The notes under the pieces are model-generated. The model had not been told where the DNA came from. It searched no databases and worked only from the letters and a program-made list of their open reading frames with translations. A stretch of 63,996 nt of DNA, counting the filler, from Guillardia theta CCMP2712 (Eukaryota; Protista; Cryptophyta): NCBI RefSeq assembly GCF_000315625.1. It is 7 parts of 7 records of this genome, joined end to end, with 100 filler letters (N's around TTAATTAATTAA, not from the genome) between each part and the next. Parts side by side here need not be neighbours in the genome. Positions count along the whole stretch, not along the records: positions 16,747 to 33,373 come from NW_005434332.1; 6 more parts are not named here. One strand, written 5' to 3'. The translations under genes and the position numbers were made by a program. Within the stretch, counting starts at the first letter, position 1. The number at the start of each line of letters is the position of its first letter. Shown one piece after another: positions 1-33,373 of this stretch.

Positions 1-1354
1 GCACTCGCCATCAAGGTGACGACACGCGGCAGCTCTGAGCGAGGCTGCGAGAGCAGAGCTCCAGCTGCAGCACGCATGTGTCAAGCAGCATCAAGCGAGC
101 ATCAGTGAGCGCTAGAGCCATCAGAGCCTTCTTGGACTCCAGCTGCCATCAAGCGGCTCAAGCACCACGAGGACTGTAGAGGAGCTTGTAGACTAGCTTC
201 ACCCCTCAGCTCCTTCTCCTCTCATGCCCCTCCGTCCTCCCGCTCCCTCCCTCCCCTCCCTCCCTACCTCTCCTCACAGCACACACTCCCCTCCCCTCCT
301 CCTGCTGTTCCTCCTCCTCTCTCCTCCATCGCTCCTGCCGCTGTTGCCTCTGCCCCTCCTCCCCGTCGACCTTGTCCCTCAGAGCTCTGACAGCCTCAGC
401 TACTCTTCATCCGCGACCTCCGTCACCGCCGATCTCCATGTCAGCTCTCTCCCTCTCCTCGCATCTTTCTCTCCCGCATCAGACCTCCCAGCAGCACCCC
501 AGCACAAGTCCTGGCTACCTCTCCAGCTGCTGGGCACATGCCTCCATCTCGCTCCTCTTTCTCACTCCCTACCTCATGCTTGGATGGGTTGGAACCCCTC
601 GCATGACCCCCCACCCCTCCTTGTCCTTACCCACCCCTCTCTTCCGCTCGGGTCTGGTTAACTTCCCACACTACATCACCCCCTACTCGCATGACCCCCC
701 TACCCTCCCCGTCTCCCCTCATCTCCACCCCCTTCCGCCCCTGCCCCCGTCAGGTCTAGCCAGTCGGGCCCCGCACCCTCCCCGGCCATCTNNNNNNNNN
801 NNNNNNNNNNNNNNNNNNNNNNNNNNNNNNNNNNNNNNNNNNNNNNNNNNNNNNNNNNNNNNNNNNNNNNNNNNNNNNNNNNNNNNNNNNNNNNNNNNNN
901 NNNNNNNNNNNNNNNNNNNNNNNNNNNNNNNNNNNNNNNNNNNNNNNNNNNNNNNNNNNNNNNNNNNNNNNNNNNNNNNNNNNNNNNNNNNNNNNNNNNN
1001 NNNNNNNNNNNNNNNNNNNNNNNNNNNNNNNNNNNNNNNNNNNNNNNNNNNNNNNNNNNCGGCTTGCGCAGTAGAGCAGAAGCGAGCACTAGCCCGCATA
1101 GACAGACATGGGGATGGAGGACGAGAAGAGCTGAGAGGTAGAGAGCNNNNNNNNNNNNNNNNNNNNNNNNNNNNNNNNNNNNNNNNNNNNNNNNNNNNNN
1201 NNNNNNNNNNNNNNNNNNNNNNNNNNNNNNNNNNNNNNNNNNNNNNTACTCGACGCTCGTCTCACCGCCAGCTCTTGCCCCTAGCAGCACGAACAAGCTC
1301 TGTCCCTTCCCCGCCATCCCCGCCTCCCCTCCAGCTCTACCTCGACCCTCCCCA

Positions 1355-16746: not shown

Positions 16747-16797
16747 GAGTAGAGAGAGAGAGAGAGAGGGCGGGGGGGGCGAGGAGGAAATCTGACT

Positions 16798-17088
16798 TTA
16801 CAATTCCCACCAATAACGCGGGGAATTTTCGGTCTTGGCTGTGAGCGCCTCAACTCCATCCTTGGTGATGAGAAGGGTGTGTTCGAACCTGGGAGATGAT
16901 AAGGTGAAGGAAAGCTGAGCAGAGTAGGCAGAGCAAGGAAGAGGAGCGCAAAGAAGAGAAGAGAAGAGAAGAGAAGAGAACAGGGGAGAGAAGTGGAGAG
17001 GAGAGGAGAGGAGAGGAGAGAACAGGGGAGAGGAGAGGAGAGAACAGGGGAGAGGAGAGGAGAGGAGAGGAGATTAAGTGAATGAGAT

Positions 17089-17126
<38 letters not shown>

Positions 17127-18116
17127 CTCACTGGGCGGATCTCTTCCCGTCCCTGGTGGTAGCAGTCCAGTTGTCCTTCCACATCATGTTCTGCACGCCT
17201 CCCTCGTTGATCATGGGCTCTATGGTGAAGATGTGACCAGGAGCCATCACTCCGTTGTTCTGCTTGTTCTTGTAGTGCAGGACTGTCGGGTTGCTGCGGG
17301 GAGATGGTGAGCGACGGAGGGAGAGCTAGCGGTTCAGTCACGAGTGAAAGATCTTGCCCACTCCGTGCCCGCAGAAATTTCTGGTCGAGGTGAAGCCCTG
17401 GAGCAGCAGGTGAGGGACAGAGAAGAGGTGAAGCAGTCGTTGCAAGATCATCATCATCAGTTTGACAGTAGTCAAGTAATCGTCGTCAACACCACCACTA
17501 TCAGCAACAGTACCACGAGCACCAGCACCAGCACCAGCACCATCAGCGGCAGCATCAGTAGTAGAAGCAGCGCACGCAACCGTCAACAAGCTCTCCTCAC
17601 CTCCTTGGTCACGATGTCATCGATCACTCCTCCGATCTGCGAGTAGGGGACGCCAGGCTTGCAGATCTTGATCGCCGCCTGCCACCTCCCTCAACGTCTG
17701 CGAAGGTGCCCCGACCTGCCCTCTCCCCTCACCTGCCAGGCGTCGTACGTGACTTTGACAAGCTTCTTTCCCGCATCGTCCACCTCGCCGACACAGAAAG
17801 TCTCGCTGCCATCGCAAGGCAAGTCAGTTGTCATTTTTGAGATGCGGCGAAGCACAAGAGGAGAAGAAGACATGATTCTTGTCAAGAATATCGAATGTTC
17901 TTCTGCACCTGCAGTCTCCGTGATACCCGTTGAGATAGCAAGTGACGTCGATGTTGATGATGTCGCCCTGTGGTTATGACACGGTGACTTGAGATCCTCT
18001 CCAAGTTCTCCCATCCACTTTCACCACCACTACCAACAGCAACAACAGTAGCAACAACATAATCATCGTCATCATCAACTGAGAGTACAAAGTGTTTTCT
18101 TAGTCAGTAACAACTT

Positions 18117-18155
<39 letters not shown>

Positions 18156-19224
18156 CGTTATCATCAATTGAAAGAACTAAAGCAAAACCCGCAGCAGCAG
18201 CATCTCACTTCTTTGAGACGTGTGTTCGTGCAAGGAATTCCGTGGCAGATAACCTGTCGGGCCACTGCAAGTCACCAACCTCAACAGCCTCCTGCTGAAA
18301 GCGCTAAACATGCCTCGTTGATAGACGTGCAAACGCTCTTAGGGAAACCGTTGTAGTTGAGCGGGGAAGGATAACTGGGTGAAACAAGTCAACGGGAGAG
18401 AAACGAGCCGAGCAAGGTGTAGAAAACTCACCATCCTCTCTTGATCGTCTCCTCGTGTACCTGGGCCAAGAACGATCAACATCTCGACAACAACAACTGC
18501 TCAACTCAGCACGCCCTTCTCACACAGCTGGGACAACCCACACAGCAGTTCACATCAAGAACATCTCGATCTCTCTCACAAGGGCATCGATCTCGTCCGT
18601 AGTCATCCCCGGCTTCACAGCAGCTCCTGCGATGTCCAGCACCTCCCTCGCCGCTCGACTTGCTGTAGGCAGACGTTAGATCACAACGACGATCGAGCAG
18701 CGTGTGAACAGCAGCAGTAGCAGCACGGAGAGAGGCAGAAGCAGGAGGAACCTGCGCGGACTCCCTCGATATCTTCCGGTGAGTTTACAGGAATGTCCCA
18801 AGGCATCCCCAGCTGTCTCGCCTTGGGTGTTCCGTCCTCTGCGTTGCCAGTCAGACAAGAAAAGGAGGGGATGAGCGAAGGAGGAGGAGGAGAACACAAG
18901 TGCCAGCTAGAAAGCAGGGAGGAAGGACAGGCGCAGTCGGGAGGGGACAGGACGACACGAGGCAAGGTCACCAGCATAGTCGGGCTTCATGATGTTGTCA
19001 GGGATCTGTCTTGGAGGAGACAGACGACTGGGTCTCTGTGTTCCTGTGTACTTGAAACTGTCGCGTGCAAACCCGAAGCCCCCTCCCACCTCAACCCTTG
19101 TCCTGGCGGCATGCCTCCGCCCCATCGAAGATTCAGGAGCCCTCAGGATGCTGCCGCACCCTGAGGAGCAGAAGGCGTGCACCCATGAGTTGGACAAGAA
19201 CACAAGAGCAACGCCAACGAGCAT
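16798..19224 (-). CDS. MAP1: Methionine aminopeptidase type 1, probably plastid-targeted (multi-exon)
   Basis: Exon peptides [74 protein letters not shown] and [20 protein letters not shown]. The N-terminus [21 protein letters not shown] resembles a signal peptide plus Phe-start transit peptide. Confidence 0.9.
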
Positions 19225-20248
19225 CGTCGATGCTGGGGAGGAATCAGTTCACTCAAGGTCGACATGTAGGAATTCTTTGACCTCCTTGCTTGCCGACAAG
19301 AAACATTTCAGAGGCCAGTGATACTCTCGCAGGAAACTAAGGAGAAACAAAGGTCAGGTAAAAGAATACATAACCATCGAGATAAGAGTAAACTAACATG
19401 TTCTCGTGCCCTATCCAATACCACCCCATTCCCTCCCATCCACCCCTTCTTATCCCATCCATTTTCTCCTCTCCATCTCACTTGCTCTTGTTCCACTCTG
19501 CTCTCTCTACTCCATCCTGAACTTTGCATCCTCTTCCCCTTCCTTGTACTCCCTCGTCTCCTCCTCCTTCCCTCCCCCTCCCCCTCTCATCTCCTCTTTG
19601 CGCCATCAAGCGCATGGAGGCCAGGATCTCACAAAATGAGACACCGGTAGGAGGAAATAAGCAAGGGTGGAACGGTTCCATGGAGGTGAAACAGGGGTAC
19701 TTTTAACGTTAAAATTAGGGGTACTTGAATGAAAGGGTGGGTACCTTCTGAAATTGGGTAGAGGGGTAGAGTATAACGTTGAAGAGAGATGCCCCGAAGA
19801 AAGCACAAGATCCGATCGCAGCGACAGCATGTCGCGAAAGAAATGAGGAGGACGAGGACGAGGACAAGGACGAGGAGAAGGAGAAGGAGAAAGAGGAAGA
19901 GGAAGAGGAAGAGGAAGAGGAAGAGGAAGAGGAAGAGGAAGAGGAAGAGGCCAGAGCGAGGACAAGGACGAGGATAACGACGAGGACGAGGACAACGAGA
20001 AAGGCGAGGAGGAGGGCGAGGAGTTAGGAGAAAAGTGGGGAGGATAAGAATACGGAAACCAAGAAGTTCCACGAAGACAAGGATGAGACAGGAAAGGCAA
20101 AGAAAACAACCGGGAAGGAAGCAAGAGAGGGGTTGATGCTGATCTTTGATCCGCGAGAAGAGCAGCTTTTTATTCATCTCAAGTTCTTCAATGAAATGTA
20201 CCATGACTCGGCTCTTACCATCGCAGGAAGAGAGAAGAGGCGACAAGC

Positions 20249-21026
20249 ATGGATCTCGACGTCCTGTTCAGTTGGCTGCACGACCAATCCTTGCTGAATG
20301 AAGTAAGCCCCATGATGCTTCTGAAGGCCCCGTGAATGACTCTTGTTGAAGTTGGCGATAGCTGCATCCTTGAACGTTGCTGCTGATGTTCTTGCGCAAT
20401 CGATCGTGAAGTTGAGGGAAAAGGAGCAGACACGATCTTGGCTGTTATGGGATTTCTTGTCCATGACAAGAGCATTGATCTGGGCGCTAATCTGCACTCC
20501 GATCATTCTAAGATGGTACTTCGATGCTACAGAGCACGGGCTGATTTGTAACTTGCTATCCCAAAGGCTCGTGTTCCTCGATGTGACATTTGGGAGAGAA
20601 GAAACGATTTCTGCGGTGCTGATGAAGCTCTCAGCGGATCAGGTAAATGTGCAACTGTCCTTTCCTCATCATGTCTTACAAGTCGCCAGCTGGTTTTCAG
20701 TCCTTTCCTGCTCGCCATGTTTCTCATCTACATCGGAGCTTTCCGTGCTGCCACAAGCTCGTACAGGTTCTCAGAGACAGCTCAGGTTATCAAGAAAGAG
20801 CTGCTTCCGATGCAGATCAGCGGCATGTTCTTCTGGGTGCCAGTGAGCCTTTCCTTGTTCACTGTCGTTCCGGACCATCTGAAGATTTTCGTGATCAACA
20901 TCGCCGGTCTCTTCTACAACACCATGTGAGATCTCCCCGGCTGCTGCGATCCGATCCCTTCTGAGAGGAATCTGTTGCAGGCTCGCCTTGAAGATCAGCT
21001 CGCAAGACACAAAGAAGAAGGACTGA
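20249..21026 (+). CDS. Mpv17/PMP22 family membrane protein (multi-exon, start uncertain)
   Basis: AADVLAQ, WDFLSMTR, KLSADQ|LVFSPFLLAMFL and FFWVPVSLSLFTVVPDHLKIFVINIAGLFYN fit the family pattern. Confidence 0.75.
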
Positions 21027-21097
21027 ACGATGTCTAGTACATGTAAATAGAAATCATGCGACCTTTGCGCTAGTTATGTTGTGAAGATGTCTCTCCA

Positions 21098-22287
21098 ACT
21101 ATCTCTGCCTCCCAGCTCCTGGATTGACCCCGATACGTGTGAACGGCGTCTCGCCAGCGGATCCGATCCCATGACTCTCGAGCAGCACCTGAGTGGCTCT
21201 CAGCGTTACAAGGGGGAGGCACACGGGAGGGTACCTTTGCTTCCTCCAGGAATTCCTTCACCATCCTTCGATGCGCCTTGTTGTTGATCTCGTGGAAGAA
21301 CTTGGCAGACTGTGCAAGGCATCATGGGAGGGACTATGTCACGACAACAGTTGTCGCAACGTTGTCAACAACTTTCACCTTCTGAAAACACGAGATCGCG
21401 TCCTGCCACCGACCATCCTGTATGCACTCGAGCCCCAGCTTCTTCCAACCCTCCGCTCGCTTCAGCGAGTCGTCTGCCGATATGTCCTCATAGCTCAGCA
21501 GCACAATGCCGGAGTCCTTTTTCTCAAACTGCACGCCGAAACGAAAGCCTTGAGGGAGAGGAGGAGGCTGAAGGTTGCTGATGGTGATCTGGGGAGTGTC
21601 GATCATTCTCTCCTCAGAGTTCATCGTGCTCCTCAGTCTCTTCCGCTTCTGGAATGTCGCCGTGTTGCTGTTGGCGTTGAGTATGGCGATGACGATGTCT
21701 CCCTGGTCGAACGAGGGGTAGGAGGTGCTGCGATCGCTCCTGTTGCCGTCGTACACGTTTCCCATACTGCTGTAGTACCACGCCTTCCCCACTCTCTGCG
21801 CCGACATCCAGCAGTCTTTCTCGCTCACATCCGAGCGGAAGAACCCGATCTTGATCTGACCTGTCTGGGGGAGGAACGTCGCGTGCTCCTTCTCCCTCAC
21901 AAGGATCTCGAACTTGTGCATCCCTGCGGTGAAAATCTGCCGGCATGCCACCAGCGGGCAGTGCCTGATGATGCTGTCCATGTTGTCTTGCACCAGCACG
22001 TTCCATGCTAGCCCGTAACCCCAAGAGATCGCGTCCCTTCCCATCCCCGGGATCTCCGTCCTCTGCTTCTCTAGCACGACCTTGCGGTTTCCCGTGGGGA
22101 CGAGACCATATTTCTTCAGCTCGTAGTCCCTCACAACCTTTGTCTTCTCGCTCGATTCTGACCTAGAGTCGGAGAACAGGTGGCTCATGGTGCCGTTCAT
22201 CTTCTGCCTGTACTCCTGCGCTTCTTTCCTCCGTCGTTCCAGCTCCCATCTTTCCTGATCCTCGTCTACCGTCTTCCTCCCTGTCAT
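21098..22287 (-). CDS. SPRY-like domain protein with a C-terminal TPR-like helix pair
   Basis: HKFEILV..GQIKIGF..AWYYSSMGNVYDG..FDQGDIVIAILN, then AEGWKKLGLECIQDGRWQDAISCFQK. 3' exons approximate. Confidence 0.6.
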
Positions 22288-22947
22288 CTTCCAACTCCCA
22301 CCGTTGACCGGGCAGGATCGACAGCCAACACAGCTCAGATCCTTCTCCTCCTCCCAGTGAAGCTCGAAGTTTACTGTGACTTCTTCTCCTCAGTTCAGCT
22401 CTTTCCTAATCCGTCGGCGCCTGGCGCCATGCTGCCGAACCCAGTAGGCCGCCACCGCACGGTGGCATCCGTTAAACTTTCATTACAGATCTGATACGCA
22501 GTGTGACTCTCAGTTAGCCCGACCCGGGGCATCGCGGCACCGGGGCCCGGGGCCCGGGGCCCGGGGCCCGCCTGTTATTTTCCGCCTGGTGGAAAAATAA
22601 CAATGATCCTTTATTGACTGAAAAATAGTATACGACTCACCACCGATGGTACTGGAGCAGGAGTATTGAGAGTTGAAGTGGGTAAAAATATTAGTCATAA
22701 GTGAGATCCAACTTCCTAGCTGGTACCCTACCCCTCATCACTCCCACATTTATCAGAATAAAGCACCCGTACTCCTCCGGCAAACTCGGAGGACTTGGTG
22801 TGGTTTGTAGCCCACGAACGATTATAGATTTTGCCGGAAAAAATTCAAATCTGTTCTGAAACTTCCAAAAATGGATCAATCATTACAAATTATTGTCCCA
22901 AAGATTGCATTACCCCCAATCTAAAGCTTGTGCGAAACCTAGCGCTG

Positions 22948-25900
22948 ATGATGCGAGGGGAGCACCGGAAAGTTATGGTGAAGGTAGAGGTGAAGGAAGA
23001 GGCGAAGGAAGAAGCAAGAGACGTCATGATGCAGGAGGGTAGCTCCACGGAACACACAGAGGACGGCCAACCATCGGGTCAGGAGCGAGAGTTGAAGAGG
23101 AGGAGGATCGATGGTTCTCGCTCAGATGACGAAACTGACGAATCTGCGGGAGAGGAGCATGAGGAGACTGAGGTCCCGAACTTCTACAGCACTAGGATCG
23201 TACAACTCAGGAATCTCCTCCAAGATATTGATGTGATGGTGCCCCAAAGCCGCAGACAGGAGCTAGGTGGGCTGACAGAGCTGTGCTTCCAACTCCAGCA
23301 GATGGTCCAGAAGTCGAAAGTCTGCTTGCTGGGAACGAACGGGGTTGGAAAAAGCTATCTGATCAACGTATGGCTCATGATAACCTCTTGCCTGCCATCC
23401 GAGTATGAGCAGTGGAATTGGAACCAGAAATCCTCGCTCATCCACGAAAACGTTAAATCATTCTTGGAGAAAACAGGCTTGACCAAGGATGATGTGAAGA
23501 GGATTGATGACACGACATCAAGTCGAACGAACGACATTGATGATATGATTGGTAGCCTGACCAACATCATTCACCCTGAGCGCACAGGACTCTCTGGTGA
23601 TGGCCAGGCTTACTTGTTGCCCAGTCAGGAGCTCGGCACCAGCAACACTACTTGCGCTATCACCTTGATTCACTCCAAGTGCTTTTGCATGCTTGTGGAG
23701 TACAGGAGCAAAGAGGAGCTACTGAAAGACGCGGACCAGTGGCTGCTGCAACCGAGGTGTAGGGAGTCGGAGCCTGACTATGACGACACGTTGCAGGAGG
23801 AAGAGATACAAAGCTGGATCGATCGATACAACGCTGTCGTTGCAGATCAGTACAGCGCTTCTGAATTTGGGATTGTCCCTGAGTATGTCAAAAGCATCGA
23901 TGATGTTCAGATGAAGCCAGAGCTTGAAAAACTCGCAGGTCGTCGGAACCTTTATGTAGGCAAAGGAAGAGATCTGCACAATGACAGAGCTTTCATCAGA
24001 GAGCTTCTGGTCAACCTTCAAAACAGTGAGGAGTTCAAAGTTGCCGTCAAGTCCGTCATAGTTGGTGTCCCCAGCGCGATTCTTGAGGAGGTGGATCAGC
24101 TGACAGACTGCCCAGGTGATGATTGTCTTGATTGGGAAGGTGCACGTAGCTGAGAAAATGTGCAGGTACGAACGAGAAGGATACTTTTTTGAAAGCTGCA
24201 ACAAGATCAGCAATCGAGGATCATGATGTGATCGTGATCCTTGCAGACAAGGCACTTCAAGCGCAAGAAAGCAGCATGAAACCACTTTGTAAGAGTGAGT
24301 TCTTGAAAAACATGGTGAGGCATCCAGAAAGGTTCAAAATTGTGGTCTTCTTCTGTAATGAGAACAGTAAAAATCTTGTCAAGTGGAGTCAACAAATCAT
24401 AGGAGATTCAGTTAAGGATCAGCCAAATCGTGAAGTTATGCTTTCAAAGAGCAAGGTCTACATGTATCAGATATTGGTGCAGGCATGTCAGAAAGCAAGG
24501 TTGGACAGAGTGATTGAAAGGGCCAAGGAAATCAGCGAATCGATTTTATACACTCACATCTATCCTTCCCTGTACGCTGCCATCGAGTTTGACAAGACGT
24601 GGCGAGATCAGAACGCACCTGAGCTGTCGCGCATCTTCAACTACATCGACAGCGAAACGATGATGGGAGTATTCCGGAAATTGCATGCCAGGAACCTGTC
24701 GAAAGCTGCGCCGAACCTCTTTGAACGAATTCAAACTTTCATGGACGAGCTCCTGAGGAATGAAAGCCAGGCAAGCGCAGTCAGTCCGGTGCAAGCAGAC
24801 ACGGCGCTGCTTGAAGGAGCTCGAGAGTTCAAGAAGCTGTTCAAGTTCCACTCACGTACAATCAAGCAAGTGAAGCAGAAGACACTGCCGCTCGTCGAGG
24901 GGCTTCGAAAACACTTTCTTGGGAGCGAACATGTCCCTGAACAAAGAAATCATCAAGTAGAAAAACTAGAAGATAGGATCAGAACGTTCATCAACAAGGA
25001 TCGCAACGGCGCTTTCGAGAAGAACTTCGTTGAATTCTTCAGTGCGTTAGTCGACGAACTTGACATCAGGGAGAACAACAAAGTCTGGATGTCGAGCAAG
25101 TGGGCCGGGAGGGGGGAAGAGTGTCACTTCTACCCTCAGATTTCTGGTTTCTTCGACGAGTCATTGCAATATGAACACCTCAAAGAAGTTCTCACACAAT
25201 TTCTGTCTGAGATGGTGGCAGATGGCATCAAAATGATGGAAGAATTCATGTCGGGGGATTTCTTCCCGGAGTACAAAAAGTCTGCAAACTTCCCGATGCT
25301 CTTGAAGCAATACATCAAAGAAACGCTGGTTGACGACCAGCTCGCTAAGGCGAAAGAAAGATTCTTCGATTTCGGCAGCGTGACCCAGAAACTGTCAAAA
25401 AGCAACTTCGAGACCAAGATCATCAGCGAAGCGACGCAGAAAGCAATCAAAAAGTACCTCAAGGAACTCGAGAAGGATCTGAAAACCTTGACTATCGTCG
25501 AGTACAAGGCGAACCTGAAGGCAGGAGCTCAACGCCTATTAGCTTATTTCTCGGATTTGTGTTTGGAACAGCTGATGAAGAAGGCAGAGTACGCGTATAC
25601 CCTCCTCGTGTCACGCTTCATTACTCTGAGCAAGAGAAACCAACCGCCCAGGATCTCCTTTCCCATCGCTTGCTACGAGTTCGCCACCTACGTGCTTACT
25701 AACTCTGGGGAAGACTGCAAGCCCTTGACCCAGGACGTGATCGACCTCCCGACCATCTGCAGGCAGATGACGGAGTGCATCCCGCGCACGCAAGCTGACA
25801 AGTACGAGGAGGTAGTTGGGAGGGAAGTCGCAGAGGCCATGGCCAGGAGGAGGATGCACAGAGAGCTGGACGGCAGTCAGCGAGAGCACGGAAACCTCCT

Positions 25901-27158
25901 GCTGGGTCCAAGCTTGAAGCCTATCAAGGATAGGGTGTCACAATCTGCTACGATGCTACAACTGCCTCTTGCCATCGAGGCCGACAAGGTGGAGGACATG
26001 CTGAGGGAGCTCAAGCAGAACAAGCTCAAGGTCTGGCCGAGCACGGAGAAAGTGAACGCAGGAGAGAGCGGGAGCATGTGTCTGTTCGAGGCCATCGCTC
26101 ACAACAGGTGGGAAGGTGAGATGCACTTGAAGGAGAAGATGATGCAGCTGAAGATTCTTTTCTGCCTTGAGATGTCGAGGAGCAACGAGACAGCTGAAAG
26201 TAGAGCAGAGTTCGCGGAGACATACCGCCACGTCATCCCCCAGCATCTCGACTGGAAGCGAGACTGGAAGTCATACCTGCAGGAGGCGGAGAAGGACGAC
26301 TGGGCTGGCGACTTCTTGTGCTTGGCGGTCTTGATGGAGAGGCTGTTCAAGCAGCCCTGTAACGCCCTCGTCTGGTGCCCAGGAATGCCGAGCGTGCTCA
26401 AGACAAACGACAAGTTGGAGCCCTACTATCGCTTCGCTGTCTTGTCGCAGGAGAACGGGCACTATGACTTCAGGATGGTGACGTCCAAGGACAGGAGGCT
26501 GGAGGAGCCGCAGAACCAGGAGGAGCTGCAGGGCGCGGAAGAGCCACAGGAGAAGGGGAGAGAGAGGTACACCCTCAGGTCGCGAGCCCCGTCAGCAATG
26601 CTGCTCTTCACCTTCAAGGTGCTGGAGTGCGATCGCTTCGAGGACCTGTGCAGCATGGCGTTGGAGCTTGGCATCAAGATCCACATCCCCAGGTCCCAGC
26701 TGCTAGCCATCGATAAGGACCGGCCGGGCTCACAGAGGATGACAGATCTGAACATGTACATCAAGGAGATGTGCGTCAAGAAATCGTCGCTCTTCCAAGT
26801 CGGAAAGCCAGGACAACATCGAAAACGACGAGACATCGAGGAGGACCCGTCGCTGGATCAGCTCGTCAGACTAGCGCAGTTGCTGCAGAACGATGAAGTC
26901 GTCATCGTGGTAGCCGAAGAGGACGAGAAGGTCTACGGAGACTGCATGAAGGCCAGGGTCCCAGTGTTTCCCTCAGGCTTCGGTAGCAGGCGAGGCCGTA
27001 CTGGCTCGGGAGCAGTCAGCATGTCTGACTTGCTCCAGAGATTGCAGAGCCGCTCGCCTGAGGCTCCAGCAGACCGTGTGAAGTTCCTGCAGGAGCAGTG
27101 GGACGAGAAGTGCGGGAAGAAGCGGAAGATTTCACAAGAAGGAGCTGCTGGCTGCTGA
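22948..27158 (+). CDS. Dynamin-superfamily (NUGGC/SLIP-GC-like) GTPase with helical region, OTU-like protease and PIN-like C-terminus (~1386 aa; one intron 24116-24165)
   Basis: G1 GTNGVGKS, G2-like LLPSQELGTSNTT, and G3 LTDCPG spliced to TNEKD by a 50-nt GT..AG intron that joins the two long ORFs in frame. OTU-like SMCLFEAIAH..WAGDF..NGHYDF. Confidence 0.8.
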
Positions 27159-27972
27159 CTCTAAGACAAACCTTAGAGACACAAGAGGAACAGTAGTCCG
27201 TTTCACTAACTGTGTGCAGACTCTCATTTAAGACGGCAATAAGAGTTGAAAGCTGCTGCTGAGTCTACAATGAACAATTAAACAACAATCACAACATGAG
27301 TCTGACGATGACTGACTGTTGCAACTGCGCTCTGGGTACTTGAGTACTTGAAACGGTCACAATCCCTGGCCGCCCCGCCGCCCAGGCACTGCTGCAGGCC
27401 CCGGCGGGCCCCGGGCCCGCGACTCGGTCTGACGGTCCGGGCCCTCTGCCGACTCGATCACCCGACTCGGACTGGCAGTGACTAAGAGAGTCACTATTGA
27501 GGCGGGCCTTGCGTGTCCCTCTGAGTGACGCCCCCTTGTCGACCGTTGGTTCTCTATGGGTGGGTACTCAAGCAGAGGGGTATATTTAACGACAAAGCTT
27601 TTACAAATGACGGGGTGGGGGTGAGTTGATTGGTGGAAGTGGGTGGGTAGGGTAGGATCACCAGGATTTTGACCGGGTAACAGTTCTAATCAATTTTTTC
27701 GGCGCACTAAAACAGATAGATTTCGAAATTTTAAAAGTATGTATGGTGCACTGACAAAAAAGTTGCAAAATTTTAATGATTGACAGTGCAACCTGCAATG
27801 TACCGGTACTATCCAGCCCATTGGATGGGCAGGAGTGGGTGGTACTGCATTCACAACGTTATTTTGTCAAAATAATTGTGCAAAGCGCACTCCAAGGTAG
27901 CACCACGCAATAATGCTGACTCATGGTGACATTGAGTAAACATTTTTGTATCGAACCAGAACTGCCCGAAAA

Positions 27973-30747
27973 ATGCAATCCAGCAGAGCAAATGATGCCA
28001 TGTTGCAGGAGCGACAACGACGACAAGAAAGGGCATTTGACCTGATAGAGAACAAAGTCATCGCTGATAGTACAAAGAAAGTTTACCGATGCAAGATCAA
28101 TAGGATCGTGCGTCTGTTACTCAAAGTGAACCCCAGGGCTGTCGACGAGGACGGCGAATTGATACTCCCAATGGCATGGAAAGATTTGAAGAGTTTGTTT
28201 GGAGACCTTGTCACCAATACTGACTTACCAAAATCTAGAAGGAGAAGAGGAGGTCAAGAGCAGGAAGAGCAGGAAGAGCAGGAAGAGCAGGAAGAGCAGG
28301 AAGAGCAGGAAGAGCAGGAAGAGCAGGAAGAGCAGGAAGAGCAGGAAGAGCAGGAAGAGCAGGAAGAGCAGGAAGAGCAGGAAGAGCAGGAAGAGCAGGA
28401 AGAGCAGGAAGAGCAGGAAGAGCAGGAAGAGCAGGAAGAGCAGGAAGAGCAGGAAGAGCAGGAAGAGCAGGAAGAGCAGGAAGATCAGGAAGAGCAGGAA
28501 GATCAGGAAGATCAGGAAGACGACGATCAGGAAGACGAAGATCAGGAAGACGACGGAGATCATGAGGATGAGGAAGAGCAGCAAGATGATCCGCATAACG
28601 TACACGAGGGTGAGAACGAGGACATTTCAGGATACCAGGCAAGCAAGAGAACGCTGTCGTTAGGAGCACTGCAGGGGTACAAGAGTGCGTTGAAAGCATA
28701 TTACAGAGACAGAAATGTAGCTTTTGACGCGACTGGAATGCCATCGGGCAGTACTTTAAACGACCGGCTCAGTCGACTCATCAAAGGTTATGGAAGGGTG
28801 GTTACTCAAAAGAAATCCACGGGAGTGATGAAATTGAAAGAAGGCAAAAGTGTCTTGGCAGTGAGAGAGTATGGAATTATTTGTGAAAAGATGACCCAGA
28901 TACGTTCAGACACTATGGCACGAGAAATAGGATCAACAGGCTTGTTCGGATTTGCTGGTACCACGATCATGTGGAACTGTTGCTGTAGAAGCGAAACTTT
29001 AGACATTCTACATCTTGAACACTTTGATTGGGAGAACGACTGCTTGAAGCTGACAATATTGAAGACCAAGATGGACCAAGGGGGTGTTGACGCCGACATT
29101 TTTTCTCCCAGAACAAGGCACATATTTGCAGCACCCAACAAACCTATGTCTTGTCCTATCTTGGCCATTGCTTTGTATGCGTTTTCCCAAACCAGAATGA
29201 GGATAAGTCACACCAAATTTTTTCTGGGAAACGACCAGAAGCAGAGGTTTGGCCAAGTCTTGAGAAGGGTATTGTCCACAGAGGACATGCAGGAGGAAGT
29301 ATGGAGGGATGTTGGTAAGTGCTAGCCTGAGGAAGTCTTGAGACTGAGATTGAAATGTGCAGGTTCGCACAGTTTTAGGAAGGGGAGCGTGACGCATCTA
29401 CTAGGCATTCCGGGAGGACCAGTCAGTACATCAATATTTCAACGAGCCAGCTGGTCCTTAGGCAACACCAAGGACAGGTACATCGGAACAGTGGAACCAG
29501 GCAATGATCAATACTGTGGGCGTATTCTAGCAGGGAACAACACCAAGAGCGAGAATTTCGATGTGTTACCTCCTCATTTCACAAGAGAAGGTCTGGCAAG
29601 AATCAACGATATTGGTATGCACAAGTTCATTGATGGATACGACACGTTCCCGGACAGCTACAAGAGATGTTTACCAATGTTCCTTGCGCAGATAGTGTAC
29701 CATCTGGACCGTCTCAAAGACATGTTTCCAAGTCACCACTTCCTATGGGGGTCACCTGTTTTTGCAGTGAAAGGCTCAAGAACAATGCAATTTTTACAAG
29801 AATTGAAAGAGCATCATATCAGTGTTTGTCGCGGGGAATGCGAAGAATGCGGTATGACCTGCAGTGGAGTTCCGATGCACGTGATGAATGTGGCTGAAAT
29901 CAGGAAGCTGCGAGAGAGTCAAGAACAGGGAACAAAGCTGTTGCACGATACAGTGTTGAATGTTTCAACTTCGCTACCGCAAGACATTTACGAGCTGATC
30001 ATTAGAAACTTTGAGGTGAACGGAGCCATTCCACTAGCTCAACGAGATCTGGAAAAGCTGCGGGAGGATCTGACATCCATGATGAATACAGGATTCAGTG
30101 AAATCATGCAAGGACTTCTGACGTCGAGACTCAGGATGCAGGGTCCTGAGGAACTGACAGGGAGAGGGGGTGGAGGGGAACTGCCAATTATTGACGACAG
30201 GACAGGCATACTGATTGAAGGCGAAACGTTTACATGGGGGGGGATGCAACATCCTGTACCTCAAGGTTTTATTTTCCCTCAGAAGACGCCGTGCAAAAGT
30301 ATGTGGCAGAAATGGCACCTAGGGCAAGAGGAGAAGATTAATGGAGAATGGAAGCGTATTGGTCCACTCAAACGTTTGGAAGGAACAGATCTAGTGTGTG
30401 CCAACATGAAGAAGAACCTTTGCAAAGCAAAAGCAGTCATGTTGGCCATCGAGGTAATGGGCAGAAGACTTGCAAATTTGAGTACTGATATTGGGATCGA
30501 CCATGAGAACTATTCAGAGTGCTTCAATCATGGTTACGTTGAACTTGTCAAGGAGAAGTATGGACCGAATGCATGGAAAAAACAGAGAAAAAGATTCACC
30601 GAGCTTTCATACACGACTATGTACAAAAGGTTATGTCGGAGCAACACAGGCCGAAAGAACAAGAGGAAGAGGAATGCGGTTGCCAACCGTGACGAAGGTG
30701 TACGACGGTGCGTGTGGACATGTTACATTGCAATGGACAGTGACTGA
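27973..30747 (+). CDS. Crypton-type tyrosine recombinase (~908 aa; intron 29315-29362)
   Basis: Catalytic set CCRSET (R), KTKMDQ (K), GSHSFRKG (HxxR), RASWSLG (W) and KDRYI (Y). The C-terminal WGG.QHPVPQGFIFP..MWQKWHLG..IGPLKRL resembles CryptonS/GCR1_C-like tails. The intron joins ORFs 27946..29325 and 29338..30747 in frame. Confidence 0.88.
28258..28520 (+). repeat. In-frame 9-bp repeat (GAGCAGGAA)n encoding (EQE)n, about 25 perfect copies plus GAT variants
   Basis: Directly visible. Confidence 0.95.
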
Positions 30748-31270
30748 CTTTGTGTAGGGTAAGAAGAATTGACGCTGCTCGAAGCCTGACCCAACAGACT
30801 CATTCTCCACTTCATTCAGACGTTGACATGGAGAGCAGCGATTGACATGCAATAGCCTACCGGACTGTAAGATGACTTACAACCAAGTCAGTGTAATATT
30901 GGTATAAACTGCGCAGATGTGTTTGCATACAACGATTATGTCTCACCCGCCTTTCACCATTTTTTCGGCTAAGTCACATACAACTTGATTATAAAGAATA
31001 ATCCAGTACTGATTTGTACCAGTTTTGGAAAACACTCATCATGATTTGTACCGTCCTGAAATGTGTTCCTTGTACCAATCTTTGTACCAAAATATTTAGT
31101 CAATATCTTTAAAACTAGTGCTATAAGCTGTGCACTCACAACAAGGTCTGTTTAGTTTCTAGGGTGTAGGTTTTTCTCTACCACGATCTCAGCTGAGCAA
31201 CTCAGACTGGCAGTGCAGCCTCCACTCGCTGCTCACGACGCCATCGCGCCTCTCTACCAGCCACATGCAC

Positions 31271-33163
31271 TCAAGCTTGCTTGTCCCGAGAGAGGAAGAA
31301 GGACGTGAAAGCCAGCTGAGCCTGCTGCTTCATCCAGGACTGATCGCCAAAGCGGTAGTCACAACCTTGAGGCTTGTTGGGAGGCACAAAATCCTCCTCC
31401 TTGATGGGATAGAGCACAACGCGCACGTCATCCCTGGAAGGAAAGATGCTGAACAAGTAATCGACTTCATGATTGTAGCACGAGCTGACGAGACACTGCG
31501 AGCAGAAACTGCCGAGGATGAGCGTCGACTTGGCAGGCAAGAACACTGAGATCATGGAGGCAGCTCCTCCTGGAGAAACTAACAGGAAGGAGCGAGAGAC
31601 CATCTCAACCTGCTCAGCAAAAGCCAGGAGGCTCAGATCATGTAGCAACACCCTTGTCGAAGCATTGCCAAGGGCATCTTGCACAGAACCTCTGACTTGT
31701 TCCATGTTGGTGACCCTTTTTCGCAGACCAGGCTTCTTCAAGATGATCAGAGCATGGTACGTCTCACTCCCTGTACGAGAGAACGAATGTATCAAAGTCG
31801 AGCGGAAACGCTTCCACAGAGGACGTGGGATCAGTTTGTTTCCTCCAGAGTAAGCGAAGAGACCATACTTGCAGTTGGAGGAGATCAGAGTCTCGAAGCA
31901 CACGGGATGTCGCATCGCCTTGACATAGATCACTGACTTGGCGAGCTCCGGCAAGATGCGTTGGCTCATCCTGTCACAATCAGCAGCTGAGTACTCGAAC
32001 AGACTCGCTCCGTCATCGCAAAGGTCGTCAACGACGATGTTTTCTGGAAGCGAGACATTTGGTATCATTGTGTACAAGGAGATGAAGGCAGGAACAATGG
32101 AATCCAAAAGAAAGTGCCCGAAGTTCCCGGCTGAGTATCTGCGCAGGAAGATGGAGGGCCCCGGAACCCACTGAGATCGACGAGGAAGCGTCAGCGAGGT
32201 CTCACTCTCCACTACCCACGCGTGCCTCTCGTCCGAGTCGTCGCAGCGACCTAGTCCAGCCCCCACGAACTGTGCGTCCTCACCCGCGTACATCACGTAG
32301 CGTCCGTGCACGTGACAGACCTGCGAGGCAGCACAAGAGCTTGTCTGCCATGCCGACGGTCCTCTCTCGCACTCCCAGCCTGCTGCATGCCCAGGAAGAC
32401 TCCAGGACCCCGAGGCTTGGTCCAAGACCCGCGACTGCCAGAAGCGAACGGCATAGAAAGCCTGTAGCTCGGCGACGTCTGCAGGCTCAGGAGAATCCTC
32501 GAGCTGGTTGAGCGAGGGCTTGTCAAATATTGCTTCCAGCTCCTCCACATTGCTGGGGTCGACAGGGACTCTCCTCTTGTGCAAGTAGATTGACATCCAC
32601 TGATCTCCTGCTCGCCTCGCTGGAAACGCGATAGGAAACGCGCGGAGCTGAGCGAGGACATGTCTGCGCATGAGCAACCCGAAACGACCAGCAACCATCC
32701 CCCCGCTCGAGTTGCGCTGCAAGTGTCGGTGCCGATTCTGAAGGACCAGGGAAGAAGGGGAGACGTCGGAGAGCATGCGGCCGATCAGTGTCGGGTGAAA
32801 CTCTTGCTCGTCATCCGTGAAGAAGATCCATGCATCGTCATAGGCTGATGCTGTCGCTTCGAGACTCGTCAGGTACCGCGCCGGAGCTCCGACGTCCTCT
32901 CCCCATGTGACAGAGATGTTGCGTTCCTTGCTCAACCCGCCGTCGTCATTCAGAGCTCCCCAGTCGGAGTAGACGCGGCTCAAGCACACGAAGACATGCA
33001 GTACTTGAGGGGCGAGCGAGCGAGCGACTCGTCGGCACTGACCTGACGCGACCCGTGGAGGGATGCAGGCAATGCTTGCGACCACTCGAGGAGGCGCACA
33101 AGAGAAAGAGCCCTCCATGCCTGCCGTCACCACCAGAAAACTGTCGCCTAGAACCTCCTTCAC
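31271..33163 (-). CDS. Two-domain glycosyltransferase: GT-A-like N-domain + GT61 (DUF563)-like C-domain; 5' end probably incomplete
   Basis: 630-aa ORF with VVASIACIPPRV..WIFFTDDEQ (DD motif), GNFGHFLLDSIVPAF, RKRVTNMEQ, and LAFAEQVEMVSRSFLLVSPGGAASMISVFLP. Confidence 0.7.
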   Translation of the reverse strand: MKEVLGDSFLVVTAGMEGSFSCAPPRVVASIACIPPRVASGQCRRVARSLAPQVLHVFVCLSRVYSDWGALNDDGGLSKERNISVTWGEDVGAPARYLTSLEATASAYDDAWIFFTDDEQEFHPTLIGRMLSDVSPSSLVLQNRHRHLQRNSSGGMVAGRFGLLMRRHVLAQLRAFPIAFPARRAGDQWMSIYLHKRRVPVDPSNVEELEAIFDKPSLNQLEDSPEPADVAELQAFYAVRFWQSRVLDQASGSWSLPGHAAGWECERGPSAWQTSSCAASQVCHVHGRYVMYAGEDAQFVGAGLGRCDDSDERHAWVVESETSLTLPRRSQWVPGPSIFLRRYSAGNFGHFLLDSIVPAFISLYTMIPNVSLPENIVVDDLCDDGASLFEYSAADCDRMSQRILPELAKSVIYVKAMRHPVCFETLISSNCKYGLFAYSGGNKLIPRPLWKRFRSTLIHSFSRTGSETYHALIILKKPGLRKRVTNMEQVRGSVQDALGNASTRVLLHDLSLLAFAEQVEMVSRSFLLVSPGGAASMISVFLPAKSTLILGSFCSQCLVSSCYNHEVDYLFSIFPSRDDVRVVLYPIKEEDFVPPNKPQGCDYRFGDQSWMKQQAQLAFTSFFLSRDKQA

Positions 33164-33373
33164 ACATGAAATAGAATCTCTTACACAAGAGGATACAGCA
33201 GGGAGGGAGGGAGCGAGCGAGCGAGCAAGGGAGGGGAGAGGGAGGGACGGAGGGAGGGAGGGACGGAGGGAGGGACGGAGGGAGGCGGAGCGAGGCGTAG
33301 GGAGGGAGGGAGGGAGGGAGGAGGGAGGGAGGGAGGCGTAGGGAGGGAGGGAGGAAGGCGGAGGGAGGGAGGC

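Follow-up and report, generated by a model that had tools for sequence, protein, structure and literature searches.

Proteins of the dynamin superfamily are known as membrane remodelers and, in the case of Mx and GBP, as antiviral machines; Mx, GBP and IRG are large self-assembling GTPases of cell-autonomous defense, and NUGGC/SLIP-GC is a vertebrate nuclear dynamin-like GTPase, possibly with a role in genome integrity. To our knowledge, no dynamin-superfamily protein carries fused enzymatic effectors. In bacteria, pairs of dynamin-like proteins protect against phage, and their P-loops are required (bioRxiv 10.1101/2022.05.11.491447). The gene described here, GUITHDRAFT_149387, a candidate innate-immunity gene by its initial annotation, of the cryptophyte Guillardia theta CCMP2712, was analyzed within a stretch of 63,996 nucleotides of joined genome parts (the window, to which all unassigned positions refer), in which a 16,627-bp scaffold occupies positions 16747–33373. 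Its product is predicted to join a dynamin-superfamily G domain to an OTU-fold cysteine isopeptidase and a degenerate PIN fold.

Transcript and domain organization of GUITHDRAFT_149387

The gene consists of two long plus-strand open reading frames (ORFs) in different frames, 22831–24153 and 24189–27158, which are bridged by one 50-nt intron. The homologue search and record comparison showed that the spliced product of 1386 amino acids is identical to the database protein (record P0001), and this record was used for all full-length protein analyses. In three runs, each of a different study (X1, X2 and X3), transcript contigs skip exactly 50 nt at the intron, and the longest of them (X1, 4287 nt) spans 22947–27283 in the aligned blocks 22947–24112 and 24163–27283. 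A poly(A) run follows position 27288 in 3'-biased raw RNA reads (X16). GUITHDRAFT_149387 is therefore a real gene, expressed, spliced and polyadenylated in G. theta, with the single GT..AG intron that was proposed earlier. The features of the locus, all on the plus strand, are as follows.

22947–27288 (+): mRNA, as delimited by the transcript-contig start and the poly(A) site
22948–24115 (+): coding exon 1, residues 1–389 and base 1 of the Gly390 codon
24116–24165 (+): 50-nt GT..AG intron, phase 1, within the Gly codon of the G3 motif DCPG
24166–27158 (+): coding exon 2, residues 390–1386 and the stop codon
22948–23274 (+): residues 1–109, acidic low-complexity N-terminus (by composition) with a KRRR motif at residues 50–53
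23275–24677, across the intron (+): residues 110–560, dynamin-superfamily G domain and first helical elements (AlphaFold2 model and motifs)
23332–23355 (+): residues 129–136, G1 motif GTNGVGKS
23647–23649 (+): Thr234 of G2, kept in 48 of 50 relatives
From 24106 (+): residues 387–390, G3 motif DCPG, split by the intron
24678–25970 (+): residues 561–991, middle region or 'stalk', presumed helical (low Pro and Gly, no hydrophobic segment)
25971–26495 (+): residues 992–1166, predicted OTU-fold cysteine isopeptidase domain (model, fold match and profile)
From 26070 (+): Cys box GSMCLFEAIAH, with Cys1028 at 26079–26081
Residues 1102–1106 (+): WAGDF motif
From 26454 (+): His box NGHYDF, with His1155 at 26460–26462, and Asp1157
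26496–26588 (+): residues 1167–1197, acidic linker, predicted disordered (predicted local distance difference test, pLDDT, below 50 at model residues 183–209)
26589–27002 (+): residues 1198–1335, predicted PIN fold of the PIN_4/SMG6 type, catalytically degenerate
Residues 1201–1210, 1226–1239, 1283–1290 and 1301–1312 (+): PIN-like strings
27003–27155 (+): residues 1336–1386, C-terminal tail, comprising a KKRK motif (27117–27128) and a helix that is conserved in the paralogues

The longest contig begins 1 base before the annotated ATG at 22948, and the other contigs begin 11–21 nt inside the coding sequence. The 5' end and the start codon are therefore uncertain by a few codons; further in-frame ATGs occur at codons 2, 10, 27 and 28. 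Searched as single sequences against Pfam, NCBIfam, PADLOC and the PDB, both exons gave nothing significant, with generic P-loop matches only, and the sole match in a word-based homologue search with exon 2 was the GUITHDRAFT_149387 protein itself.

The G domain (residues 110–560) was modeled with AlphaFold2 from a 50-sequence alignment, with a pLDDT of 89.3 and a predicted template modeling score (pTM) of 0.90. The best structural matches of the model are SynDLP, mitofusin-1 and the Campylobacter DLP, each with a VIA Z of 17.6, followed by IniA (Z 15.3) and BDLP (Z 14.0), and MxA, EHD, dynamin, Drp1, OPA1 and Vps1 match at Z values of 12–13.8 (13.8 for MxA). The first 46 rows of this comparison are all dynamin-superfamily structures (Z 17.6 to 12), and the first outsider is Era, with a Z of 12.1 over 159 residues. 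Foldseek likewise returned a dynamin-superfamily match for the model (E 4e-6, probability 1.0). The G-domain profile of the family matches IniA, the Campylobacter DLP and BDLP at G3 and past it, in the G3–G4 region, and it matches IRG at the P-loop alone, and weakly. All named feature neighbours of the G domain in the ESM Atlas carry Dynamin_N. The Pfam Dynamin_N model itself has no match in GUITHDRAFT_149387, and weak or precomputed matches to it occur in relatives only (P0010, E 5e-4; P0013; P0171). By its modeled fold, the domain belongs to the dynamin superfamily and is of the BDLP/mitofusin/SynDLP type; Mx and GBP are more distant from it than the BDLP/mitofusin branch is.

The G1, G2 and G3 motifs are conserved in 48–50 of the 50 relatives, except for the G3 acid, which is Asp in 33 of them and Glu in 16. 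No canonical G4 motif, (N/T)KxD, was found in the domain. At the corresponding place, after the strand formed by residues 447–453, the family consensus is Y-x-E-K, with Glu455 present in 44 of 50, and GUITHDRAFT_149387 itself reads C-N-E-N. The term 'GTPase' is therefore an inference about the nucleotide.

Residues 985–1335 were modeled as one piece (pLDDT 79.9), in which two domains are split by the disordered acidic linker. This model was compared with 48,161 representative PDB chains, independently of Foldseek, and all of the best 50 rows are OTU or PIN structures. The OTU part, with a pLDDT of ~90, matches OTUD3 (Z 13.9, root mean square deviation 2.7, 134 of 141 residues), yeast Otu2 (Z 13.7), OTUD1 (Z 12.8) and the nairovirus OTUs (Z ~12). 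An OTU profile built from 21 relatives, with no G. theta sequence included, matches residues 1019–1172 with 38.9 bits (E 4e-14). Cys1028, His1155 and Asp1157 stand in canonical spacing, and align with the Cys and His of those relatives that pass the Pfam OTU model. GUITHDRAFT_149387 alone falls below the gathering score of that model (13.1 versus 23.3 bits); an insertion of ~10 residues precedes the W-x-G-D motif, and ESM Atlas features for the C-terminus gave weak leads only (0.81 at most). The model and the profile indicate an OTU fold with the catalytic Cys-His-Asp residues in place.

The second domain of the C-terminal model matches the PIN domains of SMG6/EST1A (Z 11.7), Nmd4 (Z 10.9) and SMG5 (Z 10.7), as well as archaeal and bacterial PINs (Z 11.2 and 11.1), and the nearest entries in an ESM Atlas structure search with this region are PIN_4 clusters. 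At the sequence level, searches of the region gave no link to PIN: Pfam has no PIN match in GUITHDRAFT_149387, BLASTP against the Baffinella PIN region detected no similarity, hhalign of the paralogue profile against the PIN_4 alignment of the relatives returned a probability of 0.3%, a leave-out hidden Markov model of the relatives' PIN domains did not match residues 1198–1335, and a PIN-region profile search of the PDB gave no PIN match. The first catalytic acid is absent from strand 1 (residues 1201–1209) in all three G. theta paralogues, and the second is replaced by Ala1237, where relatives have Glu. Asp is kept at the third position, in the string 1283–1290, and gives way to Glu at the fourth. 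Because two of the four catalytic acids are lost, nuclease activity is unlikely, and the domain, as modeled, is probably not a nuclease.

The chain runs from the acidic N-terminus through the G domain, a spacer of ~430 residues, the OTU domain, the disordered linker and the PIN_4-type fold to a basic tail. The KRRR motif near the N-terminus is common to all three G. theta paralogues and is a possible nuclear localization signal. The spacer (residues 561–991) has a low Pro and Gly content, and its profile gave only insignificant matches in the PDB, to designed helical proteins. No transmembrane or strongly hydrophobic segment was found in the 1386 residues (the highest 19-residue Kyte-Doolittle mean is 1.24), and no signal- or transit-like N-terminus was seen, the N-terminus being acidic.

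The initial annotation, made from the sequence alone, had described a dynamin-type GTPase with G1, G2 and G3 motifs, an OTU-like segment with Cys box, W-x-G and His box, a PIN-like pattern and one 50-nt intron. The three domain calls are borne out. The motifs lie where they had been placed, both C-terminal domains model as the folds proposed for them, the PIN region without a sequence-level match, and the caution expressed over lost acidic residues in the PIN-like segment was well founded.

The family and its exchangeable end domains

phmmer, run exhaustively over 1.84 billion representatives, yielded 113 clusters that share the G domain, nearly all of which align at residues ~121–540, and iterated local profiles delimit a shared domain of ~450 residues in all 113. 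The named members are all 'uncharacterized'. More than 20 clusters have an OTU domain C-terminal to the G domain, in most of them beyond a spacer of ~440–520 residues, similar in length to that of GUITHDRAFT_149387, and five relatives in all pass the Pfam OTU threshold. The domains that Pfam assigns to the ends of family members are listed below.

P0069: OTU (1.7e-11) followed by PIN_4 (3.1e-7), both above threshold
P0102: PIN_4, above threshold
P0005, from the cryptophyte Baffinella frigidus: PIN_4, just below threshold (E 6e-4)
P0088 and P0042: OTU, above threshold
Cryptomonas paramecium member: NIF phosphatase after the OTU
Amphibian and caecilian members: C-terminal GIY-YIG nuclease
Other tails: protein kinase, Tudor, PHD and WW
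N-terminal extensions: BRK, ARID and PHD-like fingers

These architectures define an undescribed eukaryotic family of the design 'dynamin-like NTPase + spacer + exchangeable end domains', with OTU, PIN, GIY-YIG, kinase, NIF phosphatase and chromatin readers among the modules at its ends. The parts are known; the family and its design are new. The initial annotation did not recognize the combination seen in GUITHDRAFT_149387, and it is indeed absent from the literature searched, in which no description of the architecture or of these locus tags was found. It is not a one-off, however, as the order OTU-then-PIN_4 recurs among the relatives, in P0069. The chromatin- or DNA-binding head domains of relatives point to a nuclear setting for the family. 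Algal or protist proteins with such heads (BRK, ARID plus a C4 zinc finger, and PHD-like fingers) are P0029, P0060 and P0149, and also P0051 and P0086.

Catalytic residues are unevenly preserved. The OTU Cys is kept in just 9 of the 23 OTU-bearing clusters, and Cys and His are both kept in just 7. The decay appears complementary between cryptophytes: Baffinella P0005 seems to lack the OTU Cys (and His) but has all four PIN acids, and in G. theta the reverse is found.

Named members come from the cryptophytes Guillardia, Baffinella and Cryptomonas, the haptophyte Chrysotila and the streptophyte alga Chlorokybus and, among vertebrates, from many frogs including Xenopus, one caecilian, bichirs and two sharks. 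Among the named matches, most model eukaryotes are without the family, whose distribution is patchy. Frog copies often have adjacent LOC numbers, several per genome, which suggests tandem arrays. The vertebrate sequences group together with good support in a quick tree, as a single clade that lacks OTU; the deep branches of this tree are not resolved. The vertebrate subset that ends in GIY-YIG is among P0011, P0022, P0031, P0068 and P0188–P0192, which are amphibian and caecilian proteins. A metagenome contig carrying a relative has a GC content of 52–60% and unannotated neighbours. A scan of viral contigs with the G domain of one relative found nothing, and the only matches in a viral structure library, to giant-virus dynamins, were weak (best E 3e-4) and not better than bacterial ones.

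A tblastn search with the GUITHDRAFT_149387 protein revealed two more full-length copies in G. theta, on scaffolds JH993008.1 (L004 5468–9549) and JH993027.1 (L005 5463–9540), each made of two intact ORFs (365+991 and 369+982 codons). The three copies are 38–45% identical pairwise, and the introns of the two additional ones (53 and 49 nt) have the same position and phase as the 50-nt intron of GUITHDRAFT_149387. The OTU Cys is kept in all three, and the OTU His only in GUITHDRAFT_149387. Three divergent paralogues, a patchy distribution and variable end domains do not describe a conserved single-copy housekeeping gene, the alternative that the initial annotation had named. The two additional copies are mis-annotated in the reference assembly, in which only the last 182 residues of one (GUITHDRAFT_153162) and the last 103 residues of the other (GUITHDRAFT_153962) are called; unannotated gaps of ~4.5–5 kb upstream of these models hold the remainder. 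That two of three paralogues are wrongly annotated as tiny genes provides a practical correction for the assembly.

Proposed role and alternative explanations

On balance, we lean toward reading GUITHDRAFT_149387 as a dynamin-like motor joined to an OTU isopeptidase and a dead PIN adaptor that acts in the nucleus in a conflict role. By analogy with the rest of the dynamin superfamily, nucleotide binding would make the G domains dimerize and the protein assemble, through its stalk, on a target, and this assembly would concentrate or switch on the OTU isopeptidase for the removal of ubiquitin or a ubiquitin-like modifier. Binding of nucleic acid or protein would fall to the dead PIN, as an adaptor like the inactive PIN of SMG5. 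Nuclear action is suggested by the basic motifs that resemble localization signals and by the BRK, ARID, PHD and Tudor domains of relatives. A conflict role, in antiviral or genome defense, would fit better than housekeeping because the effectors are variable, catalytic residues have been lost repeatedly, the paralogues are multiple and divergent, and the distribution is patchy. The bacterial anti-phage dynamin-like pairs offer a precedent for such a role of the family.

Several points weigh against this interpretation. The G4 motif is non-canonical, and Gly (G-S-M-C) replaces the usual Asp three residues before the OTU Cys, where relatives have D-G-x-C. Catalysis by the OTU may not be the conserved role, because the two other G. 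theta paralogues have lost the His. The PIN assignment comes from the predicted fold, with no sequence-profile link to PIN; the AlphaFold alignment for residues 985–1335 included PIN_4-bearing relatives, which possibly aided that fold, and the call is good, though dependent on those relatives. Stalk-mediated assembly is assumed by analogy, and a role in innate immunity or genome defense is plausible from architecture and evolutionary pattern alone. The chromatin-type partner domains would fit a non-immune nuclear function equally well, and, together with the basic motifs, the chromatin readers of relatives point at least as much to nuclear function as to immunity. The absence of the gene from the literature counts on the same side.

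Two other explanations we regard as unlikely, both to the same degree. One starts from the identity of the structural matches: yeast Otu2, which is among the matches of the OTU, removes ubiquitin on the 40S subunit, and the best PIN matches, SMG6, Nmd4 and SMG5, are nonsense-mediated-decay proteins. GUITHDRAFT_149387 might accordingly be a regulatory housekeeping factor of RNA surveillance or ribosome quality control, in which the OTU deubiquitinates ribosomal or RNA-bound proteins, the PIN, without catalytic acids as in SMG5, tethers the protein to mRNA decay, and the NTPase remodels ribonucleoproteins. Otu2 and SMG6 are, however, no closer than other OTU and PIN structures, with Z values within ~1–3; the relatives carry DNA- or chromatin-binding domains and a GIY-YIG nuclease, and a patchy, multi-copy family with highly variable end domains would be unusual for core RNA-decay machinery.

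The other takes the loss of catalytic residues as its point of departure, and holds the protein to be a pseudo-enzyme scaffold, in which the OTU and the PIN are both binding modules and action is by nucleotide-driven assembly on, or coating of, a marked target. It would account for the 14 of 23 OTU-bearing clusters without the catalytic Cys, for the missing OTU His in two of three G. theta paralogues, for the Gly at Cys-3 of GUITHDRAFT_149387, and for the absence of the first PIN Asp from three of three paralogues, while both domains are still conserved across copies of 38–45% identity. What speaks for an active OTU is that Cys1028, His1155 and Asp1157 are retained at canonical distances. Cys and His are also kept in seven of the family's clusters, several of them passing the Pfam OTU threshold.

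The remaining proposals are disfavored. Guillardia has a complex plastid and a nucleomorph, and the closest structures of the G domain are the fusion or tethering proteins mitofusin, Fzo1, SynDLP, BDLP and the Campylobacter DLP, so that a membrane-remodeling dynamin of the mitofusin/BDLP type, acting on an organelle with OTU and PIN as regulatory add-ons, was considered. Such a role is very improbable for a protein with no transmembrane segment, an acidic N-terminus that is neither signal- nor transit-like, and conserved basic motifs of the nuclear-localization type; its relatives carry chromatin readers and nucleases, and the family is not conserved across plastid-bearing lineages. A tyrosine-recombinase gene with HxxRKG ... 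W ... Y motifs and a G. theta paralogue lies ~0.8 kb downstream on the same strand, and might suggest that GUITHDRAFT_149387 belongs to a mobile element, as a component or passenger. This idea was rejected as having next to no likelihood, because the other two GUITHDRAFT_149387 paralogues lie among ordinary genes with no recombinase homologue found within 9 kb, and because paralogues at 38–45% identity, with an old intron in common, are not the product of recent transposition.

Three neighbouring loci were noted on the scaffold. The downstream recombinase is Crypton-like and is encoded on the plus strand by ORFs 27946–29325 and 29338–30747, with a short GTAAGT..AG intron probably between them; its sequence contains the HSFRKG ... 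WSLGNTKDRYI motifs besides a long acidic (EEQ)n repeat, and its paralogue GUITHDRAFT_113076 (794 residues) is 52% identical. Further downstream, a 630-codon ORF on the minus strand (31271–33163) contains a Glycosyltransferase 61 domain (Pfam E 1.4e-7). Upstream, a 317-codon ORF on the minus strand (21334–22287) has weak SPRY and TPR matches (E ~1e-3) and is probably one exon of a larger gene.

Returning to the motor with an OTU isopeptidase and a dead PIN adaptor, the family of at least 113 clusters, which has no Pfam G-domain model and no name, places such a motor in one chain with deubiquitinase, nuclease, kinase, phosphatase or chromatin-reader domains. Should the motor control these effectors, this would be a new mode of regulating deubiquitination or nuclease action, and the family could be an unexplored arm of cell-autonomous defense common to algae and lower vertebrates. 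As a more tentative extension, which we consider possible and not probable, its members may form a hitherto unrecognized, eukaryote-wide class of nuclear dynamin-like NTPases by which interchangeable enzymatic effectors, namely a deubiquitinase, a PIN or GIY-YIG nuclease, a kinase or a phosphatase, are brought to chromatin or invading nucleic acid. Were this so, they would constitute a eukaryotic counterpart of prokaryotic 'NTPase + effector' defense, expanded as amphibian tandem arrays and retained in several algal lineages. Because multi-copy Xenopus genes belong to the family, it is testable in a standard laboratory animal.

Comparison with known systems

The closest described relatives of the G domain are those of the BDLP/mitofusin branch (SynDLP, Campylobacter DLP1/2, IniA, BDLP, mitofusin and Fzo1), with which GUITHDRAFT_149387 shares the fold (Z 14–17.6 over 220–280 aligned residues), the G1, G2 and G3 motifs and a long region after the G domain. 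It differs from them in its low identity (10–17%), its lack of a Dynamin_N match and its G4. By contrast with these proteins, it has no membrane anchor or paddle, and an OTU and a PIN follow the stalk.

The OTU domain resembles the deubiquitinases OTUD3, OTUD1, OTUD5/DUBA, yeast Otu2 and nairovirus vOTU in its fold (Z 11–13.9), in the C-L-F of its Cys box and in its His-Tyr-Asp box. It departs from them in scoring below the Pfam threshold on its own, in the Gly at Cys-3, in the insertion of ~10 residues, and in its placement at the end of a GTPase stalk. The PIN domain shares a five-stranded fold with the PIN_4 domains of SMG6, SMG5 and Nmd4 (Z 10.7–11.7), but has no detectable sequence similarity to them; only the third acid is unchanged, the fourth being Glu. 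The PIN of SMG5 is likewise without catalytic acids.

Among the vertebrate proteins, the name NUGGC/SLIP-GC is on none of 60 matches, and no paper was found that ties it to the family. With the Mx, GBP and IRG proteins and the bacterial anti-phage pair, the family has in common an immune-like pattern of evolution, as seen in the multi-copy arrays of frogs, which appear to be in tandem, and in its variable effectors. In the comparisons with GUITHDRAFT_149387, MxA (Z 13.8) ranks below the BDLP/mitofusin group, and the IRG match is weak and confined to the P-loop. The architectures differ as well: the Mx, GBP and IRG proteins and the bacterial pair are without fused enzymatic effector domains, whereas the family of GUITHDRAFT_149387 has them.

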